Shown here: positions 6,780-60,282 of the stretch, piece after piece
How positions within the stretch are numbered: position 1 is the first letter of the stretch
Layout of the letters: the number at the start of each line of letters is the position of its first letter
Assembly: GCA_016748015.1 (NCBI GenBank)
Contig: JAAOMT010000660.1
Coordinates: 1-64,000, forward strand
Direction: 5' to 3'
Length of the DNA: 64,000 bases
Origin: Geosiphon pyriformis uo1
Taxonomy: Eukaryota; Fungi; Glomeromycota
Made by a program: the position numbers and the translations under genes
Notes under the pieces: model-generated
Seen by the model: the letters and a program-made list of their open reading frames with translations, nothing else
The model's database searches: none
Told to the model about the DNA's origin: nothing

Positions 6780-8295
6780 ATGCTTTATCAAAGAAAGCAT
6801 CAAACTAAAAATCACTTTCAAAAAGTTAACGGGCAAAATATTTTTCTATCATTTTTCATTGTTTTTTTCTTAAATTCAATTGTACATGCAAACCCAATAT
6901 CCACCACAAGTATTACTAAAAGAGAGGATTTATTTGGATCAATTCCTTCGAATGATAATATCAATTTAAACTTGGATCCTTTTTCCATATCTAGTAATCC
7001 TTTTTTAGATGATAATAATAACAACCAAAATACTAACACATTAGATGGAATCCCTAGTTCACAAGAGATAGGTGATTTGCCACTTTTGTCATTTATAACT
7101 AATAGTGAAACATTACCAAATAATTTTCAATTACCTAAAGAGGAACTAGCTTCAAATAATTACTTCGACAATACAAGTCCTCTTACAAGTCAAAATATTG
7201 AAAATTATAAAACACTATTTGCTAACGCTGGCTCAAATCAAGGAATTAAGAAAGAATTTAATGAGATAGATAGTGAGAAAATCGAATTATATGGACTCTC
7301 TGCACAACGTATTTATTGTAGTATACCTTTAGAAGCCGAAGATATTATATATTCTTCCGATGGAATTCAAGGTACCCGGATTGAATATTGAAATTTTTTA
7401 GCTTTTTTAACTAATATATGTATTAATTGAAATATTTATTCTTTAGTAATGGCAGAAAAAGATGCAGCAAACTCGGAAATAATTATTAGTTTCCGTGGTA
7501 TCACACGAGCGACTAACATCATTAGTGATATCACACTAACTAATTACCCTTATGATGAATCTTCAAAAGTTCATCAAGGATTTTTGAAGATTTTTCAAAA
7601 AAATGAAAAAGCATTGATTAATCAGGTGTTAACGATGATAAATGATAATCACCCTCTTACTTTAACTATGACTGGGTTTGATTCTGGTGGTGGTATGTAA
7701 AATATTTTTCAAAGAGAAAAAAGTATTTTTATTTAAATTAATACCCTCTTTAATTGAATAATAGAAGCCAAAATAACTTTTTATAATTTATTTCTTATTA
7801 GTATATGCAATCTTTACAGCTTTAGCCTTGAAATTGCAAGGCAATTCATTTCAATTCAAAGATATTAACCTGTACACATTTGGACAACCTCGTATCGGTG
7901 ATAAAGCTTTTGCACAGCTTGTGAAAGAAAAACTAATTGTACGACGAGTTATTTATAACAATGACCTTATTCCACATAAACCTCAAATAGCTCAAGGATA
8001 TCTACACTTTGACACAGAGTATTGGATTAAGCCTCTTGGTCTTGCTAAATTTCAAACTTTTACATGTGAAGGAATAAAAGACCAATCTGGAAAATATCTA
8101 GGTGAAAATCCGGTAAGTTTTAAGTAAATGAGGAAAGAATCATTTGCATATCTTCCAATTTGATAAAAAAATTATAATTAATTATGTTCATTATTTTAGC
8201 AATGTTCAAATTCTGTACAAAAATTGGCATTGATCGCACATGAAGGTCCATATTGGTTCCTAAACTTTAATAACTGTAAAAAAGATTTTTATTAA
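6780..8295 (+). CDS. Secreted class-3 lipase-fold protein 2 (about 414 aa), elbow GFDSGG
   Basis: Exons 6780-7371, 7447-7692, 7802-8112 and 8200-8295. Signal peptide (VHA|NPI) then TKR. Motifs ISFRGI, KVHQGF, TGFDSGGVYA, YTFGQPRIGD, RVIYNNDLIPHKP, HFDTEYW, AHEGPYW. Confidence 0.92.
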
Positions 8296-10049
8296 CTATA
8301 ATACCCAATACCATGCTTTTTATCTTTATATATATTTTTTATAGCTATTACATGTCATAATTTTTATATTTTTTGTAAAATCTTTAAAGGAATTAAAGTT
8401 AGTCTTTTCAATAAGTTTTTAAGATTTTCTGAANNNNNNNNNNNNNNNNNNNNCCTTGATACCTTTATCCCTTCAATTTCTCCATCTCTCGGATTTTACT
8501 AATAGTCTAAATCACATCAAATTGGTTATATAGAGANNNNNNNNNNNNNNNNNNNNNNNNNNNNNNNNNNNNNNNNNNNNNNNNNNNNNNNNNNNNNNNN
8601 NNNNNNNNNNNNNNNNNNNNNNNNNNNNNNNNNNNNNNNNNNNNNNNNNNNNNNNNNNNNNNNNNNNNNNNNNNNNNNNNNNNNNNNNNNNNNNNNNNNN
8701 NNNNNNNNNNNNNNNNNNNNNNNNNNNNNNNNNNNNNNNNNNNNNNNNNNNNNNNNNNNNNNNNNNNNNNNNNNNNNNNNNNNNNNNNNNNNNNNNNNNN
8801 NNNNNNNNNNNNNNNNNNNNNNNNNNNNNNNNNNNNNNNNNNNNNNNNNNNNNNNNNNNNNNNNNNNNNNNNNNNNNNNNNNNNNNNNNNNNNNNNNNNN
8901 NNNNNNNNNNNNNNNNNNNNNNNNNNNNNNNNNNNNNNNNNNNNNNNNNNNNNNNNNNNNNNNNNNNNNNNNNNNNNNNNNNNNNNNNNNNNNNNNNNNN
9001 NNNNNNNNNTTAATAGGCTAAAAAGAAATTTTAATACTATTAATAGTAAAAACTATCTATCTTAAAACAAGAAATTAGTTAATAAAAAAGTTTTATCTAT
9101 TATACTAAGTTATAATTAATATAATTTTTCTATATAATTTATTTCTAAAAAATAACTGAAAACAAACATATTTTTCTTTTTTTCAATAAAAATAAATTAT
9201 ATTTCTTAATATTTAAAAAAAATTAAGATGTTATTTAAACCACTATATATTAAAAACTTATAATTTAAGAATAACTAATAATAAAGTTCTAAATATTGTA
9301 CATGATTTTTCATAATTATTTTATTGCAAATAAGTTATTTTCAAAAAATTATATGAATATTGTTATAATATAAAGTATGTATTTAAGATTATTTAAAAAA
9401 AATGCACAATATTCTAAATAAAAAGTTAAATATGACAAGTGCAAAATAATTATAAAGCTAATTTATTTACACAATTAAGCAACTACTATTAATTGGCTAA
9501 AAAATCATCACAAAATCCTTTCAAAAAAAAATTTTGTTAACAAATATAATACTCAATAAGACTCATTTTGGAAAAAGTTGGATAAAAATTAAAAAAAGAA
9601 CAAAAGCAAAAAAAAAGAAAAAAAAAAGAAATAATAAAAAAAGAAAAGAAGCAATAAAAAAAGATAAAAAAAATAAACAAGAGAACTATTTTGCACATAT
9701 TAAATTTATTACTAAAAAAATTTTCAAATTATTAAGTTATTTATTATAAATTGGCTCCTCTTTATGATGATTTAATTTAATAACAGCAATTTAATTTAAT
9801 TGAAAAATTAAATTTTTTTAATGTTTTATTAATTACAAGATCTTTAATTATTATTATTAGTTACTAATTTTTTTAAATACCAAGAAAAAAAGAAAATGTC
9901 TATCAAGATCTGTCTTACATTAGCAGTATCAAGTTAAATTCTTGAACAAATATTGTTTATAAAACTACATAAGCATAAAGTATAAACTCTGAGCTCTTAA
10001 AAATTTTCCAAGTTAGGAATTTTTTTTATTTGTGTTTTGCTATTTGCTT

Positions 10050-11438: not shown

Positions 11439-12170
11439 AATAACCAGTATGAAAATACTGGTGTCCACTAACTCACTTACATAAACAGGACGAAACTACC
11501 GGCGTCCGCCAACTTACGAACATAACCAGGACAAAATTACCGGTGTCCACCAACTCACGAGCATAACCAGGATGAAATTACTGACGTCTACATACTCACG
11601 AACATAAACACCAATAACCAGTATGAAAATACTGGTGTCCACTAACTCACTTACATAAATACTAATAACCAGTATGAAAATACTGGTGTCCACTAACTCA
11701 CTTACATAAACAGGACGAAACTACCTGCGTCCACCAACTCACAAACATAACCAGGACAAAATTACCGGCGCTCACCAACTCACGAACATAAACACCTATA
11801 ACCAGGATGAAATTACCGGCGCTCACCAACTCACGAACATAAACACCTATAACCAGGACGAAATTACCGGCGTTCACCAACTCACGAACATAAACACCTA
11901 TAACAAGGACAAAATTACCAGCGTCCATCAACTCACGAACATAAACACCTATAACCAGGACGAAATTACCGGCGTCCACCAACTCACGAACATAAACACC
12001 GATAACCAGGACGAAATTACCGGCGTTCACCAACTCACGAACATAACCAGGACAAAATTACCGGCGTCCACCAACTCACGAACATAAACACATATAACAA
12101 GGACGAAATTACCGGCGTTCACCAACTCACGAACATAAACACCGATAACCGGTACAAAGAAACACCAACA
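11439..12170. repeat. Minisatellite array of 51-bp and 41-bp units
   Basis: Tandem accaactcacgaacataaacacctataaccaggacgaaattaccggcgtcc with variants. Confidence 0.95.
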
Positions 12171-18700: not shown

Positions 18701-19506
18701 AGCCTATCGAAATTTAACTCAGGAATTTGAAATGATCGATATAGACTATGTAAGAAACTTAATGTATAATAAAATTATATAATCAATACAAGTATTTTTA
18801 AATAAATAATAAAAAAATGGATAAAATACTTTTTTACTGTATAAAGATATTAATTTGATCTAGTACTAAAAAAAATGATCACGTTCGGTCTACTTTTTTT
18901 TGAAACTTTTTAATAAAATATTTAAACAAGTTTTTTGATAAAAATTGGGTTAACTGCCATAAATTTACATTCTGCATTATTCCGCTTTCTCAATTTATTT
19001 GTTTGATGAATGAGTCATTTGTGCTCGCTTTTTAAGATGAAATTTGTTTTGAAAGTCAAAAAGATATTAAGATTCGCATCCTGCCACTAACAAAAAAAAG
19101 TCTGCCTAATCCGAATTTTTATGATTTTCTTTGCTGTAGTAAAAATACTACAAATCCCCTGCTGTTGTCACTTTAGCTTAATATTTCTGTTTTTTTTTTT
19201 CATTCAATTGGTATTATATGAAGCTTAGGCATAACATGAGAACTTTTTGATGTTTTCAATCGAACGAATCAATTTGTAAGCGAGTACAAAGTTCCATGGA
19301 GAAATGGAATCACATGGTAATTAAACTAAATGGAAGAAAATATAAATGCAAGATCTTGAGCTTTGGCATCGAAAGTTGGATCAAAAGAGTGAGGAAAACT
19401 TATGAAAAGAGATCAGAATCTTTAGCATTTTTACAAAACAAAAACCAGATCTTAACAATAATAGTATTCGTCAAAAAATTTCTATCTTTTCAATTTTTAC
19501 TACAAC

Positions 19507-19810
19507 ATGCTAAAAAACAAACAAACCATTGTTTCATTAATTTTGACCATTGTTACCAGTTTCGATTTATTCGTCAATCCTGCTTGGCTCCTAAAAGAGA
19601 TAGATCTCTCATGCCTAAAGATGCACAAATCAAATATATACCAAAGAAACACGAAATTTATGGCACCCATGAGCATACTGGGGCTATTAAGTGAGGGGTT
19701 TCAAAGAGTAACGAAGAAGAACTTGGTTTCCATCAACACACAGGCATGGTGACTGATTTCTTAAAGAGACATGAAGGAAACGGTCCTCATCGACAACTCC
19801 CTGATTTCTT
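19507..19810 (+). pseudogene. Frameshifted paralogue of the His/Met-rich repeat precursor at 39312-40343
   Basis: Across three frames: MLKNKQTIVSLILTIVTSFDLFVN, KRDRSLMPKDAQIKYIPKKHEIYGTHEHTG and HQHTGMVTDFLKRHEGNGPH. These align to MLNNKQNIILSILAAVTGLGLFVN, ERDGSLMPKGVEMRRLPKRHEGHGTHEHTG and QHTGMMTGFLKRHEGQGSH. The upstream region is also similar. Confidence 0.9.
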
Positions 19811-19845
19811 GATAAAGTGCACCAAGAATTATAAAACATGGTTAA

Positions 19846-37822: not shown

Positions 37823-38224
37823 ATGCTATCTTTCTTTCCAAAAATTATTAACTCCCCTCATATACAAAATATCAATAAAAGACAAAAATTTTTGTTTAAA
37901 CTTCTTGTTCTAGTTATCTATATAACTTCACTTTTATATTCCATCTCAATTCCTCCAATTGCAGCTTTGCCAATAAATACGAGCAACCTTTCAAAAAGAA
38001 ACGATTCCTATCAATATATCCACCCCTCTAATATTCATAACTTCTCCTCTCAAGATTTCGAACCTGTCAGTTTTGATGACTCCTCTTCTCAAGATTTCGA
38101 GCTCCTCAGTTTTCATGACTCCTCCTCTTCTCAAGATTTCGAGCCCCTCAGTTTTCATGACTCCTCCTCCTCTTCTCAAGATTTCCAGCCAGGATTGGTT
38201 TCATATATTCCTGGAATAATATAA
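37823..38224 (+). CDS. Small secreted repeat protein (133 aa)
   Basis: Leader, then IAA|LPINTSNLSKR, then four S(n)QDF(E/Q)xx(V/L)S(F/Y)-type repeats. Upstream TATATAAA at about 37702. Confidence 0.78.
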   Translation: MLSFFPKIINSPHIQNINKRQKFLFKLLVLVIYITSLLYSISIPPIAALPINTSNLSKRNDSYQYIHPSNIHNFSSQDFEPVSFDDSSSQDFELLSFHDSSSSQDFEPLSFHDSSSSSQDFQPGLVSYIPGII

Positions 38225-38520
38225 TAACCTCTTAAATTCTGATTCATCATCTAAATATTTTTATGTAATATTGAGTAAAATTTAATGAATATGAAAATTT
38301 TTACTTTGTTGTATTTTATTTTATGTCTTTTTTAATTCATTGAACTCAAATATTTTGAGATTTCTTTTTGGCTGGTTTCAAATTCAATTTATCAAGAAAC
38401 ATTAAAATTATTTGAACTAAAAAGTTGATAAATATAATTTAGATTTTGAATAAAAATGGTGGTTTTTTTTTAAATATTAAATTTTGCTATATATATAACC
38501 TCAATTTTGAACCAATTAAA

Positions 38521-38545
38521 CAGCAACAACAACAACAACAACAAC

Positions 38546-38587
<42 letters not shown>
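38521..38587. repeat. (CAA)n(TAA)n microsatellite; further (TAA)n tracts at about 39165-39268 and 60968-61004
   Basis: Direct reading. Confidence 0.95.
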
Positions 38588-39176
38588 TTTATCCATAAAT
38601 TCGCTTTTTGCTTAAAAGGCATGATTTTTATCTTATCAGTAGGGATATCTATCAGCTTTAATTTAAATTAAGGTATAAGCAAGAAGTGAAAGATTATTAT
38701 TTGAAATAATCTCAAATAAATCATTGGATTCTTCTTTTTTTGATCTAAAAATAATTTCGGGTTTTCATTATATATATATATACATTAATATTGTGCTTTT
38801 AAAAACATCTCAATGCCTTTTAAATATCATTTTGAGAAAGTTTTTCTCTTTGCTTTTTTAACCTGTGACGAAAGTTTACTTTTTGCGCTTGAATAAATTA
38901 TTATCTACTTCATATTTTCCGATCAAATAACATTTACAAAAAAAATTATAGCAGTAAATTTTCAAAAATATCAAATATACAAGATCTTCAAAGACTTTTG
39001 AGGCATTTTATTCAAGATCAATTACTTAAAGTAAAAAAGAAAATCTTTCCCCATATAATTTTAAAAAATAAAAACAAATCAAGACGCATCCTGAACAAAA
39101 TTTATAATGTAAATCATGATTTTTTACCGGAAAAAATCACTTGACCATAATGTCCAATATAATATTAATAATAATG

Positions 39177-39216
<40 letters not shown>

Positions 39217-39225
39217 TGATAAAAT

Positions 39226-39260
<35 letters not shown>

Positions 39261-39311
39261 TAATAATAAGGCTAAATAAAACTATTTGACAAGTCCTTCA
39301 TGATCAAGTTT

Positions 39312-40343
39312 CTACATTGCTTGAGGTGGCATTGGGTAACTCAGTGAACTCAAGTTATCGCCATTCATCTCCTTCCCATTTAATTTTAGCATTGATTCCA
39401 TGTTTTTATTCATGTTCCATTCCATAACGGGTTTTGAAATTAAATTTTGTGCAGTTGGTTTGAAGGCAATTGGTTCCAAGTGCATTTCAGGGCTTGAAAG
39501 TGGGAGCATCTCGTTAGTCATTGGTATCATTTCAACATCTGCTGGCATTTTCATTGTCATTGGCATCTCCATAGAAAGGTCGTTGAATGCCATATCCATG
39601 CCTGCATCTTGATGAGAACCGTGTCCTTCATGTCTTTTTGAGAAACCAGTCATCATTTCTGTATGTTGATGAGATCCATGTCCTTCATGTCTTTTTGAGA
39701 AATCAGTCATCATTTCTGTATGTTCATGAGATCCATGTCCTTCATGTCTTTTTGAGAAATCAGTCATCATTCCTGTATGTTCATGAGATCCATGTCCTTC
39801 ATGTCTTTTTGAGAAACCAGTCGTCATTCCTGTATGTTGGTGAGAGTCGTGTCCTTCATGTCTTTTGGAGAAATCAGTCATCATTTCTGTATGTTGATGA
39901 GATCCATGTCCTTCATGTCTTTTTGAGATCATTTCTGTATGTTCATGAGATCCATGCCCTTCATGTCTTTTAAAGAAACTAGTCATCATTCCTGGATGTT
40001 GATGAGAGCCTTGTCCTTCATGTCTTTTAAGGAAACCAGTCATCATGCCTGTATGTTGCTCCATACCAACATCGTGACGCTTTGGAAACCCTGCCATCAT
40101 ACCCTCAACATTTTCGTGCCTTTTTGAAAATTCTGTATTCATAGTCCCAGTGTGTTCATGGGTACCATGCCCTTCATGTCTCTTTGGAAGACGTCTCATT
40201 TCTACTCCTTTGGGCATGAGAGATCCATCTCTTTCATAGCTCTGCCAGGAGCCATGATGAGTTGGAGCGGCGTTGACGAATAAACCAAGACCAGTAACAG
40301 CGGCCAAAATTGATAAGATAATGTTTTGCTTGTTGTTTAACAT
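39312..40343 (-). CDS. Kex2-processed repeat protein (KEP-like), precursor of His/Met-rich peptides (343 aa)
   Basis: Signal peptide VNA|APT. There are 11 KR-H junctions, with consensus unit HEGHGSH(E/Q)HT(E/G)MMT(D/G)FSKR (57 bp). The C-terminal tail is Met-rich. Confidence 0.92.
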   Translation of the reverse strand: MLNNKQNIILSILAAVTGLGLFVNAAPTHHGSWQSYERDGSLMPKGVEMRRLPKRHEGHGTHEHTGTMNTEFSKRHENVEGMMAGFPKRHDVGMEQHTGMMTGFLKRHEGQGSHQHPGMMTSFFKRHEGHGSHEHTEMISKRHEGHGSHQHTEMMTDFSKRHEGHDSHQHTGMTTGFSKRHEGHGSHEHTGMMTDFSKRHEGHGSHEHTEMMTDFSKRHEGHGSHQHTEMMTGFSKRHEGHGSHQDAGMDMAFNDLSMEMPMTMKMPADVEMIPMTNEMLPLSSPEMHLEPIAFKPTAQNLISKPVMEWNMNKNMESMLKLNGKEMNGDNLSSLSYPMPPQAM

Positions 40344-42915
40344 GTTGTCGGTAAAAATTAATTAAAATGAGAATGAGAAGATGCAAATTGTTTGACCGAT
40401 AGTATTAATGATAAGGTCTGTTTTTTGGAAAAAATGATAAAGAAATTGGCCTCTTTTTATAAGGTCTAGTTACTCTTTTAATTCGACTTTCGATAGAAAA
40501 ACTCAAGATTTTGCTGTAAATGTTGACGATTTCTCCCGCTTTGGTAGGTTAATTACCCTCGTCTGGAAAATTGATCGGTCCGATCAAAAAAAAAAAAAGG
40601 TGCGATTTATTTGAACATGGGTAACAGTAACGATGAAAAAGTTTCCCGAATTGAATTGGAATAATGTTGTGAAATATTTTGAGTTGTTTCTTGAGATAAG
40701 ATAGAATTTTAATCGAAAGAAGCTAGTTTTCTGATGTTCTGTTCTTTAAAATTAGAACTTTTTGCCCATCGAGTTTTATCAATCAATAGAGATTTCCATT
40801 TCAACATATTTTGTCAAGAATTACAGTTTCATTTCTCTTGAAAATCCATTACTTTTTTTGATTTTTTAACCTTGTATTTTACAGTGTAATTAAATGGAAT
40901 TGAAAGTACCTGAGCTTCATGAAACACATCATTTGGAAGGATATACGATAGACAAAGGGATCCTGAGAAAAATTTTCCTTTAATCAATTGTCAAGTTGGG
41001 AAACTTTTGATACTTTTTAGGGAATTGACAATAACAAAAATATGATCGGGTCAATGGAAGAGGAAAGGGAAATCTCAAGGGAATTTTTATTTTTATTTTT
41101 ATTTTTTTTAGTAAGCCAACAACAACAACAACAACGGAGAATTTGTGATGTTTCATCCTCACTGTTTTTGTAACAATGGAAATCATAAATATATGGAGAC
41201 TTCCGCAATAGGCAAGAATTTTTATTCTAAAAAGAAATTCGTATGAATATGAGATCTCAGTTTTTTTTGACTATTTCTCTTTTAAATTTTTTTTGCGATT
41301 AATATCAGTGATCAAAACACAGATGAAATCAACTATGACAAAAAATAATTTTAAAATGGGGCTAAACTCATGACGAACTATATCAGTAAGACTCGATCAT
41401 AAGGTAATTTATGATGTGATTTTTTTTCTTTACAAACAGAGATGTGTACACGCATTTTGAAGTTTTTTTGATACCTTAAATATTATTAAATGTGTAAAAA
41501 ATCTGTTATCTGGAATAGAATCATATGATTCAATTTTTTTCTAATATGATTAGCTATCTTTAATCAAAAAGTAAATCATCAATCAAGAAGTAATATTTGA
41601 AGCTTATGACCAACTCTAGCCCCAGGAAAATGAAAATGAAAATGAATTGCTTATCATAAATTGATGAAAGATAAAAAATGATTTTATCGTTTAAATTTAT
41701 ATTCAAATTATGAGTTTTTTTTTAAAAAAAACGGTTTTGAATTAAACTCATAAAAAACTACTAGATAAAACTCAATATTTGTAATGCCTCGATCGAAAAT
41801 TTTTTTTTTTTTTAACTATCAATAAGCTTCTAGCAAATCAGAAGGTAATCGAAAATTTTCTTAATTACTTTAGAAAACGATATTTCATTAAGCGAAAGAA
41901 AAAATCCATTCTAAATAACTTATTATTTTGAATCATGGTAATTAAGAATTTATTATTCTAAAGGACCTAATGAATAAATTATTTTGTAAGAGCATTCTGA
42001 ATATAAAATTTGATCTTTCCTTTAATAAAGATATGATGCAAAAAATTCATAACTTGGAAAATAACAAAAAAAGTTGAAACATAAATGATGATGCCATTTT
42101 TATGATTAAAAAAGAAAATGATAAAAAAAAATATGTGTTGAAGGCAGCAAGCAAAGAAGAAAGGAAGGAAGTAAGTAAGAAAGGAAAAAATGTTTATTCA
42201 AGATAAATTTACCTATTTTAAAAATATTTTTTTTATGCAAAAAGTTATTAAAATCATAATATCAAATTTTTAATTTCTAATTTTTTGTAGAAAATATATT
42301 AAAAAAACTTTAGATATTATTATTATTATTTTATTTTTCTAAAAGATTTTTCATCTTTTTGTATATATATATATTAACTTTTATATATTTTTTGTTTTCT
42401 TGGCTTTTCTTTCTTTTATAAAATTGATACTTTAATTCATTACACTTTATATTTTTTGTCAAACATTGATAATATTATGATGTTGATTTAGTATTTTTGA
42501 TTTCAAAATATATATATATATAATGCCATGATTTATGTTTATTAATCTTTTAAAGAGTTAAAAAATAAAATTGTGAGCATGGTTTTTAAATTTTTAGTGT
42601 TTATCTTTATAAAAAAAAAATACTTAATATTTTTCAAAAAGATCAAGGTTTTTTATGTGTAACCCAAAAAGAATATTAGAATCAAAGAATTCTTTTTTTA
42701 TTATACACACATGAACAGATAAGTGATTTCTCGGAAAAAATATCTCTAAAAAATATATATATAAAAATAAAAATGATACTCTTTTATTGAAAGTTTGATT
42801 TTTTCCGATATTTACTAAAAATCTTTTTATTTTGAAGATTTCCTGTTTTGACAATTTCATTATCGTTTAGCTTTTTCTTTGATTTTTGAAAAAATCATTT
42901 CTTTACTTTTAAAAA

Positions 42916-56444: not shown

Positions 56445-57141
56445 TTATCGCTTCTGGAATATTTTCTTCAAGGTTTCAAAAGCCTCCATAAATCCTTGAT
56501 CTGTGGATTTTCGTAGCAAACTAATTGCTTTATGCAAATCACGGTCTGTTCCCACTGCTTTTCGATAATTTCTCGCAAGTGCCCATTGTCCTGCAAAATG
56601 GCTGCTTTCAGCCGATTGTTTTGCCCAATAAAATCCTTGTTTCGCATTCTGCTTTAACCAATCGCTTATAAGATGTTTTTAGAATTTATTTTAGTATCTT
56701 GATTCAGCATAAAATATTGATTAATTCCAAGATGGTTTTGGTATACCCATAATTCTTCCCTAAGAAATACCCCACCGCAGCTTGAGCAAGTGCAATACCC
56801 TGAGCTGCCGCTTTCAACTGCCAATGAAAGGATTCTTTGTCATCATTTTCAATTTCATCCGCATAACAAAATTGGCCGATAGGGTCACCAAGTTCGGCGG
56901 CTTTTCGAAAAGATTTTTTCGCAAAATCTTTGTTGATTTCTGTACCGATTCCATATTCATAACAAAGACCAAGCAAACTATAATCTCTCGGAATGTGTTG
57001 TTCACTTTTTACGTCGTTAAAAAATTTTTGGGCGTTCCCTTCGAGACATCTTGTGATTTCCTCTGGGATGTTGTCTATCTTTTGTGGATCTGACAAGGCG
57101 TTTTCGACTGTTTTCCAAAATAAATCTTTCATGTTTGACAT
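56445..57141 (-). CDS. Sel1-like repeat protein (about 204 aa)
   Basis: Exons 57141-56747 and 56664-56445. Motifs LGLCYEYGIGTEIN...KAAELGD, KAAAQGIALAQAAVG, GFYWAKQSAE...GQWALARNYRKAVGTDRDLHKAI. Confidence 0.9.
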
Positions 57142-57816: not shown

Positions 57817-60282
57817 TCATGCTCTCTTCATCTTGTGATCGTTGAAATATTCAGAGGATCCCATGTCACCGTTAAGAGTTGATTTTTCACTGTTGAAAGC
57901 CAATTTTTCATCTTGAGCAAGTGGCTGAGCACCATTAAGATGTTCTTGGTTCCATTCTTGTCCATTGAAGGCAACTTTATCACCCTTAAGAATTTGCTCA
58001 GATGCAATGCGAGGCTCAGGAATATATGATCGTTCGGTGAAGCCTAATTTTCCATCTTTAATGACTGGCTGACGAGCAAAACCTTGCTCTTGAGTCCATG
58101 CTGGTTCGTTGAAGGCTAAATGTTCACCTTTGTGAGTTTGTTGATCGTACGAAGCGAAACGAGGCTCCTGAGTCCATTCTTTTCCATTGAAAGCCAAATT
58201 TTCACCTCTCAGCATTTCTTGACCATGAGAAGCGAGACGTGGTTGTTGGTTCCATTCTTGTCCATTGAAGGCAACTTTATCACCCTTAAGAATTTGCTCA
58301 GAGGCAATGCGAGGCTCAGGAATATATGATCGTTCGGTGAAGCCTAATTTTCCATCTTTAATAACTGGCTGACGAGCAAAACCTTGCTCTTGAGTCCATG
58401 CTGGNNNNNNNNNNNNNNNNNNNNNNNNNNNNNNNNNNNNNNNNNNNNNNNNNNNNNNNNNNNNNNNNNNNNNNNNNNNNNNNNNNNNNNNNNNNNNNNN
58501 NNNNNNNNNNNNNNNNNNNNNNNNNNNNNNNNNNNNNNNNNNNNNNNNNNNNNNNNNNNNNNNNNNNNNNNNNNNNNNNNNNNNNNNNNNNNNNNNNNNN
58601 NNNNNNNNNNNNNNNNNNNNNNNNNNNNNNNNNNNNNNNNNNNNNNNNNNNNNNNNNNNNNNNNNNNNNNNNNNNNNNNNNNNNNNNNNNNNNNNNNNNN
58701 NNNNNNNNNNNNNNNNNNNNNNNNNNNNNNNNNNNNNNNNNNNNNNNNNNNNNNNNNNNNNNNNNNNNNNNNNNNNNNNNNNNNNNNNNNNNNNNNNNNN
58801 NNNNNNNNNNNNNNNNNNNNNNNNNNNNNNNNNNNNNNNNNNNNNNNNNNNNNNNNNNNNNNNNNNNNNNNNNNNNNNNNNNNNNNNNNNNNNNNNNNNN
58901 NNNNNNNNNNNNNNNNNNNNNNNNNNNNNNNNNNNNNNNNNNNNNNNNNNNNNNNNNNNNNNNNNNNNNNNNNNNNNNNNNNNNNNNNNNNNNNNNNNNN
59001 NNNNNNNNNNNNNNNNNNNNNNNNNNNNNNNNNNNNNNNNNNNNNNNNNNNNNNNNNNNNNNNNNNNNNNNNNNNNNNNNNNNNNNNNNNNNNNNNNNNN
59101 NNNNNNNNNNNNNNNNNNNNNNNNNNNNNNNNNNNNNNNNNNNNNNNNNNNNNNNNNNNNNNNNNNNNNNNNNNNNNNNNNNNNNNNNNNNNNNNNNNNN
59201 NNNNNNNNNNNNNNNNNNNNNNNNNNNNNNNNNNNNNNNNNNNNNNNNNNNNNNNNNNNNNNNNNNNNNNCGGTGAAGCCTAATTTTCCATCTTTAATGA
59301 CTGGCTGACGAGCAAAACCTTGCTCTTGAGTCCATGCTGGCTCGTTGAAGGCTAAATGTTCACCTTCGTGAGTTTGTTGATCGTACGAAGCGAAACGAGG
59401 CTCCTGAGTCCATTCTTTTCCATTGAAAGCCAAATTTTCACCTCTCAGCATTTCTTGACCATGAGAAGCGAAACGTGGTTCTTGGTTCCATTCTTGTCCA
59501 TTGAAGGCAACTTTATCACCCTTGAGAATTTGCTCAGAGGCAATGCGAGGCTCAGGAATATATGATCGTTCGGTGAAGCCTAATTTTCCATCTTTAATAA
59601 CTGGCTGACGAGCAAAACCTTGCTCTTGAGTCCATGCTGGCTCGTTGAAGGCTAAATGTTCACCTTTGTGAGTTTGTTGATCGTACGAAGCGAAACGAGG
59701 CTCCTGATTCCATTCTCGTTGATTGTCACCCTTGCGAATTGGTTGTCCATAAGTATCAAGGCCTGACTGAGGAATGTAGGATCTTTCAGTAAAACTTGGT
59801 TTTCCATCTTCAATTGGCTGACGAGCAAAGCGTTGCTCTTGGGTCCATGCTGGTTCATTGAAAGCTAAGGAGGTTTGATGTCCAATGGGTTCACCACTAA
59901 CTTTGCTATATGCGAATTTACCAAGTTGTTGTTCATCGTGACGAGGCATTGAAGCATAGTTACCATTCCAGACTGTAGGCTTGCTAGCAGTCAATATAGT
60001 CTCACTTTTCATATTTCCGTACGTATTTGAAGCTTGTTGACTCCAGTTCTCTTTTTCATTGCCCAAAGAATTTTTTCCAAATTGATCAATAGGGCTCTCT
60101 TTGCTGTACGCATATTTGTTGAGTCTTTGGTCATAGAGAGAAGCAACTGGAAGTTGATTTTCACCGATCCATTGACTGTGGGCAACACCGGGCATCCTCT
60201 CGAGCGGTGCAGCTTTAATACAGGCCATGGCGGCAAAAAAATATAAGAGAATGGTTTGCTTGGAAGCACGTTTGCCTTTCAT
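57817..60282 (-). CDS. Secreted tandem-repeat protein with 300-bp (100-aa) super-repeats; the centre lies in an N-gap
   Basis: Signal IKA|APLER. Identical anchors are 300 bp apart (58104/58404 and 59340/59640). The gap at 58405-59270 makes the true length unknown. Confidence 0.88.
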   Translation of the reverse strand: MKGKRASKQTILLYFFAAMACIKAAPLERMPGVAHSQWIGENQLPVASLYDQRLNKYAYSKESPIDQFGKNSLGNEKENWSQQASNTYGNMKSETILTASKPTVWNGNYASMPRHDEQQLGKFAYSKVSGEPIGHQTSLAFNEPAWTQEQRFARQPIEDGKPSFTERSYIPQSGLDTYGQPIRKGDNQREWNQEPRFASYDQQTHKGEHLAFNEPAWTQEQGFARQPVIKDGKLGFTERSYIPEPRIASEQILKGDKVAFNGQEWNQEPRFASHGQEMLRGENLAFNGKEWTQEPRFASYDQQTHEGEHLAFNEPAWTQEQGFARQPVIKDGKLGFTXXXXXXXXXXXXXXXXXXXXXXXXXXXXXXXXXXXXXXXXXXXXXXXXXXXXXXXXXXXXXXXXXXXXXXXXXXXXXXXXXXXXXXXXXXXXXXXXXXXXXXXXXXXXXXXXXXXXXXXXXXXXXXXXXXXXXXXXXXXXXXXXXXXXXXXXXXXXXXXXXXXXXXXXXXXXXXXXXXXXXXXXXXXXXXXXXXXXXXXXXXXXXXXXXXXXXXXXXXXXXXXXXXXXXXXXXXXXXXXXXXXXXXXXXXXXXXXXXXXXXXXXXXXXXXXXXXXXXXXXXXXXXXXXXPAWTQEQGFARQPVIKDGKLGFTERSYIPEPRIASEQILKGDKVAFNGQEWNQQPRLASHGQEMLRGENLAFNGKEWTQEPRFASYDQQTHKGEHLAFNEPAWTQEQGFARQPVIKDGKLGFTERSYIPEPRIASEQILKGDKVAFNGQEWNQEHLNGAQPLAQDEKLAFNSEKSTLNGDMGSSEYFNDHKMKRA

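Follow-up and report, generated by a model that had tools for sequence, protein, structure and literature searches.

At positions 39312-40343 of a stretch of 64,000 nucleotides from the Glomeromycotina fungus Geosiphon pyriformis (the window), the minus strand carries an open reading frame whose translation is rich in His and Met and is divided by Lys-Arg (KR) pairs into a row of similar units. Is this a genuine gene of the Kex2-type precursor class (KEP), the product of which is cut into a set of short secreted peptides, and would those peptides serve as ligands for metal ions outside the cell? Both had been proposed from the DNA alone, in what we call here the sequence-only reading. KEPs are common in fungi and a function is known for almost none of them. 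If the metallophore reading is true, it would give KEPs a new functional class and fungi a new kind of metal handling, in which extracellular metal ligands are made by a ribosomal, enzyme-free route, and it would open a way to study how metals are exchanged in the only fungus-cyanobacterium endosymbiosis known. Should the metal reading fail, the gene would remain a clear case of rapid KEP gene birth and decay in Glomeromycotina.

The coding sequence is complete (343 codons and a stop), intact and uninterrupted, and its translation is 343 aa long. Over the parts covered by contigs of a public sequencing run, X1, it is intronless, and the collinearity of these contigs with the genome argues against introns. 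The local GC content is 27-30%, and as stops are frequent in such DNA, a chance origin of a 343-codon open frame is extremely unlikely, at an estimated 1e-13 or so per start. Residues 1-25 (40269-40343, minus strand, as are all features of the gene) form a predicted signal peptide, whose n-region contains a Lys and whose hydrophobic core spans residues 7-24 (by a heuristic hydropathy scan, the window value is above 2 over residues 7-13). The cut would fall after VNA and before AP, in line with the -3/-1 rule (Val -3, Ala -1). In the AlphaFold model a helix over residues 4-24 is the sole confident element of the precursor; beyond the signal peptide the chain is modelled as disordered, with a mean pLDDT of 46 and values below 50 in this part. 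A pro-region of 30 aa follows (residues 26-55; 40179-40268), which ends in LPKR, a kexin site of the LxKR type. Then comes the array of ten His/Met-rich units (residues 56-237; 39633-40178), each closed by KR and with a core unit of 19 aa (57 nt), and after it a C-terminal tail of 106 aa (residues 238-343; 39315-39632). The opening of the tail resembles a repeat unit; the remainder is Met-rich, with an alternating-Met run at P0001:258-266, and the tail as a whole holds 18 Met (17%), five overlapping MxM motifs and no further dibasic site. The whole protein contains 40 His and 39 Met (together 23%) and 0 Cys. Two other readings of the same DNA were rejected: the 128-aa open frame at 39587-39973 on the plus strand is an antisense reading of the repeat array, and an N-terminal exon of a Ctr transporter is at odds with an X1 contig that runs collinear past the stop codon and with a signal peptide that is cleavable.

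The translation bears out the signal peptide and the eleven KR-H sites that the sequence-only reading had described. The KR sites lie at residues 54, 74, 88, 106, 125, 141, 160, 179, 198, 217 and 236, and His is the next residue at 11 of 11, as had been claimed for the start of every predicted product. Ten peptides are predicted, no two of them identical. The earlier count of about ten was right, whereas the lengths, given as 12-17 aa, come to 12-18 aa after removal of KR; the peptide quoted at the time as an example is P0001:200-216. The Met-rich tail, the pro-region and the two decayed paralogs described below had gone unmentioned in the sequence-only reading. His stands at positions 1, 4, 7 and 9 in seven of the ten and an MM pair, at positions 12-13 of the unit, is found in seven. 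Both features occur together in four, so the statement that most carry four His plus MM was slightly overstated. Tandem Repeats Finder describes the array as a 57-nt unit in 8.3 copies with 86% matches. The best-kept columns of the unit are His1, the acidic residue at position 2, Met12, Phe16 (the P4 residue of the next site) and KR; units 2-4, which are older and diverged, have lost some internal His and retain His1, the acidic residue 2, the Met pair, the P4 Phe and KR. Since all eleven KR-H sites go back to duplication of one unit, they do not count as separate events. P4 of the KR sites is Phe, Ile or Leu, and P1' is His. Both LPKR and a hydrophobic P4 are contexts favoured by kexins, and His at P1' together with Glu at P2' might have been retained for processing and not for metal ligation.

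The precursor class itself is already known. Its members include MF-alpha1 of S. cerevisiae, Rep1 of Ustilago maydis and the KEPs of Rhizophagus irregularis (PMC6339444, PMC7329392, PMC5293756), and Glomeromycotina are rich in them (PMC6339444, PMC5293756). The published sequence criteria are a signal peptide, at least three repeats, dibasic sites between the repeats, and repeats that make up at least 15% of the length (PMC6339444). The Geosiphon protein has a predicted signal peptide, ten units, KR at every unit boundary and an array that takes up 53% of its 343 aa, and it qualifies on every one of these counts, which upholds the Kex2-type architecture first proposed for it. We consider it highly probable, judging from the sequence, that this is a lineage-specific KEP gene.

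The processing machinery is encoded in the same genome. A kexin gene lies on contig C608, where Peptidase_S8 exons precede a P_proprotein domain at a single locus, the domain order of kexin and furin, and there are several loci for S10 carboxypeptidases. We infer that the precursor is cleaved and secreted. The pre-pro-protein would enter the ER via its signal peptide, the fungal kexin would cut after each of the eleven KR sites in the late Golgi, and a Kex1-like S10 carboxypeptidase would remove the C-terminal KR, with neither Ste13-type trimming nor a UstYa-type tailoring step. The STE13 signature, XA or XP after KR, is absent, and HE or HD follows every KR; PF11807 (UstYa/DUF3328) has no match genome-wide, in a search to which the control genomes were equally silent, so that this absence weighs little. 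On these results as a whole, linear peptides with a free N-terminal His are to be expected. The products would be ten different linear peptides of 12-18 aa and a Met-rich fragment of 106 aa. The sequence-only reading had seen no DUF3328-type gene in the window and had judged linear products likely; this agrees with the genome-wide result, which the silent controls qualify, and with the larger open reading frames of the window that were tested, none of which contains a tailoring-enzyme or other Pfam domain. In other fungi, mass spectrometry has detected linear peptides released from KEPs (PMC9769878).

Is the gene transcribed? Its sequence is present in one public run only, X1, the library type of which is not on record and is guessed by software to be DNA. 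Three X1 contigs cover the gene (39277-39651, 39622-39708 and 39914-40424), all collinear with the genome, at a word depth of 225-900 as against 30 at the neighbouring open reading frame 37823-38224, and there are none on the flanks at 38268-39205 and 40425-42000. The gaps between contigs within the gene coincide with the tandem repeats, where assembly graphs break. A motif scan of the upstream 1.2 kb gives a single TATAAA box, at 40456-40461, 118 nt upstream of the ATG and 37 nt upstream of the outer contig end at 40424. The 81 nt between this end and the ATG (40344-40424) are a probable 5' UTR, the collinear contig ending here being no proof of the transcript start; on the other side, a 3' UTR (39277-39311) runs into an (ATA)n microsatellite at 39159-39269. 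The pattern is transcript-like and transcription is probable, with the caveat that such contigs prove neither transcript ends nor levels. We conclude that this is a real and probably well-expressed gene. Over the upstream 1.2 kb, yeast-type CuRE, CuSE, ZRE, Aft1 and MRE elements occur at or below chance, and these are yeast consensus sequences, uninformative for a glomeromycete. Two further observations concern the 3' side of the gene. The microsatellite that adjoins it is scored as (ATA)37 by Tandem Repeats Finder, and an X1 contig enters it by about 20 nt. Beyond it, the open reading frame 37823-38224 (plus strand; 133 aa) is a convergent orphan without a Pfam family, and the contig of depth 30 covers its end and stops 33 nt past its stop codon.

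What the peptides would do is a question of their chemistry. After trimming they contain no Lys or Arg, and they have a charge of -0.8 to -3.7 at pH 7 and a pI of 4.2-6.3. Counted over the spacings that matter for metal ligation, there are 16 HxxH, 8 HxH, 8 HxxM and 1 MxxH. An ATCUN site, with His at position 3, is absent: position 3 is Gly, Asn or Val, and His is at 1 and 4. The histidine brace, to which the N-terminal His had been likened, is a comparison that cannot be claimed for a disordered peptide. Metal binding is nonetheless plausible from composition and motif spacing, although a biased composition need not by itself denote one particular chemistry. The peptides would bind extracellular borderline and soft metals, Cu(II)/Cu(I), Zn and Ni, and might act as a buffer, sponge or scavenger at the hyphal or symbiotic interface; no metal transporter or other metal-related gene is found among the window's open reading frames that were tested. 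Taken as one chain, from a KEP through ten linear peptides to extracellular ligands for Cu, Zn or Ni, this proposal has in our judgement not quite an even chance. Its most specific form we put forward tentatively: a linear, ribosomal, Kex2-made peptide metallophore or sponge with an N-terminal His, four His and a Met pair in each unit and a tail of Mets motifs, which would handle Cu, Zn or Ni where Geosiphon meets the soil or its cyanobacterial endosymbiont.

Comparison with known systems gives this proposal some context. Mets motifs occur in the ectodomain of Ctr1, and Met-rich segments in CopA, PcoA and CueO; the tail of the Geosiphon protein has clustered MxM and MxxM runs, a motif-only resemblance in a protein without a transmembrane or cupredoxin domain. 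The precursors of ustiloxin- and phomopsin-type RiPPs (dikaritins) share with it a signal peptide followed by KR-separated repeated cores. The Geosiphon cores, however, contain no Tyr or other cross-linkable residue, nor any Cys, and because no UstYa/DUF3328 was detected either, linear products are expected, unlike those of dikaritins. The zincophores Pra1 and Aspf2, which fungi secrete to scavenge metal, contain unstructured regions rich in His (PMC3386192, PMC9780748). They belong to a conserved family of folded proteins about 300 aa long and are paired with a dedicated transporter gene, whereas the Geosiphon gene is without homology and without a nearby partner transporter, and its products would be peptides. 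As with many KEPs, the host of the gene is a glomeromycete; its peptide sequence shows no relation to any catalogued KEP motif, and neither the acidic, His/Met-rich composition nor the long Met-rich tail is described in the KEP literature searched.

How far, then, do relatives help to decide between a metal ligand and something else? A word-index search of 5.8 billion proteins returned the protein itself only, and an exhaustive HMMER phmmer search of 1.84 billion representatives gave no relative; four further phmmer matches (E 8e-8 to 9e-4) were to unrelated proteins with repeats of similar period. Pfam, searched with the whole protein, the repeat array and the tail, returned no family at E up to 1, a PDB sequence search yielded one match at E 0.94, which is a chance match, and the best score for ESM Atlas features was 0.82, below a useful level. 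A metagenome scan produced 40 pattern matches, 0 of which were confirmed. Of the published KEP catalogues, suggested earlier as a place to look, the supplements of two contain none of six short unit strings. As far as these searches reach, the peptide family is new and undescribed. Its orphan status means that no function is supported by conservation.

The best-surviving alternative, unlikely in our view yet the one to be taken most seriously, is that these are KEP peptides with a non-metal role, as signals, pheromone-like molecules or effectors acting on Nostoc or other microbes, and that His and Met are incidental to a receptor-binding sequence. Most KEPs have been proposed to be signals or effectors (PMC6339444), and in the KEP-rich Glomeromycotina SP7-like effectors bear KR repeats (PMC5293756). 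The units, at 12-18 aa, fall within the 9-24 aa class of alpha-pheromones, and ten slightly different variants resemble a diversified set of ligands. Against this, the missing STE13 signature is a difference from pheromone-type processing, no relatives were found in other Glomeromycotina, and 23% His plus Met, with ligand-type spacing and a Met-run tail, would be superfluous for a receptor ligand.

A further possibility arises from the comparison with SilE, the nearest functional analogue of the Geosiphon precursor as proposed here. SilE is an exported, disordered His/Met protein that binds metal ions through HxxM and MxxH motifs and acts as a molecular sponge (PMC5008109). Common to SilE/PcoE and to the Geosiphon protein are export (predicted here), the absence of Cys, disorder and repeated HxxM-type His/Met motifs; there is no sequence homology in the Pfam and PDB searches. 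SilE is bacterial, periplasmic and intact, whereas the Geosiphon precursor is eukaryotic and is expected to be cut into short peptides. It may be asked whether it too is left uncut, or only partly cut, and forms a long disordered His/Met polymer, such as a metal sponge of the wall or matrix or an adhesive layer. The disorder predicted for the chain after the signal peptide would suit such a polymer, SilE does its work as an intact disordered sponge (PMC5008109), and R. irregularis SP7, in spite of its KR repeats, is described as acting as the native protein (PMC5293756). We nevertheless regard the uncut form as improbable: KR stands at all eleven boundaries, with a hydrophobic P4 and with LPKR at the end of the pro-region, a kexin is encoded, and eleven exposed sites in a disordered secretory chain are unlikely to escape cleavage.

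The history of the gene bears on a different doubt, namely that it is a young and possibly function-less orphan, in which a 57-nt tandem expansion behind a signal peptide is transcribed under little selection. Within the 128.3-Mb assembly (792 contigs), two decayed copies were found. The first is a pseudogene 20 kb away in the window, at 19250-19830 on the plus strand (approximate coordinates). In common with the KEP gene it has the signal peptide, some three units and a stretch of promoter and 5' UTR of roughly 250 nt; deletions of 11 nt and 9 nt and a TGA stop disrupt it. The second is a frameshifted fragment on contig C507, beside an assembly gap. A degenerate DNA pattern for KR-HEGHG matched, genome-wide, the KEP gene, the pseudogene and two sites with one mismatch on contigs C568 and C657 and nothing else; the C568 site is a chance match. 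On this sequence evidence, the gene family is small and young, and a single member of it is intact. Contig C507 also shows a segment of about 240 nt that is duplicated within locus L003 (G000:C507:25343-28495), at 56-291 and 1127-1362, about 1.07 kb apart; it lies beside the decayed fragment of the KEP gene and a gap of 50 N and could reflect either a repeat element or an artefact of assembly.

The decay of two sister copies and the failure to find a homologue among 1.84 billion representatives are what a function-less orphan would lead one to expect. So is the pN/pS of about 0.66 among the seven 19-aa units, which are young; a value of this size, as estimated from the units, falls short of strong purifying selection. 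Another point on this side is the open antisense strand of the array, a repeat artefact. A frame of 343 codons has, on the other hand, stayed intact in AT-rich DNA with frequent stops, neither the signal peptide nor LPKR nor any KR site has been lost, the older diverged units have kept His1, the MM pair and the P4 Phe, and the apparent X1 depth is high. Lack of any function is, on this balance, a poor bet, and a KEP gene whose peptides may bind metal is the reading that we prefer.

His-rich peptides such as histatins are antimicrobial, and a histatin-like attack on membranes or intracellular targets, which the sequence-only reading had drawn by analogy, is the most improbable alternative of all: although the trimmed peptides become about neutral to +2 at pH 5, they are anionic at neutral pH, without Lys or Arg and with no amphipathic helix predicted, so that the comparison fails because they are not cationic, and metal withholding, the more plausible antimicrobial route, belongs to the metal reading itself.

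The window holds some other features of note. The open reading frame 57817-60282 (minus strand) encodes another secreted repeat protein, with a signal peptide and units of about 30-40 aa that bear AFNEPAWTQEQ-like motifs and no KR; a stretch of N at about 58.4-59.3 kb, an assembly gap, interrupts it and yields spurious open reading frames on both strands. In a short open reading frame at 56704-57141 (minus strand), a Sel1 repeat scores 30.6 bits, slightly below the cut-off of 30.7. The GC content of the window reaches its minimum, 14.7%, at 8001-10000, and its GC-richest part (32-38% GC) lies at 11440-12150, where a 51-nt tandem unit is present in about 12-15 copies with 74-82% matches.
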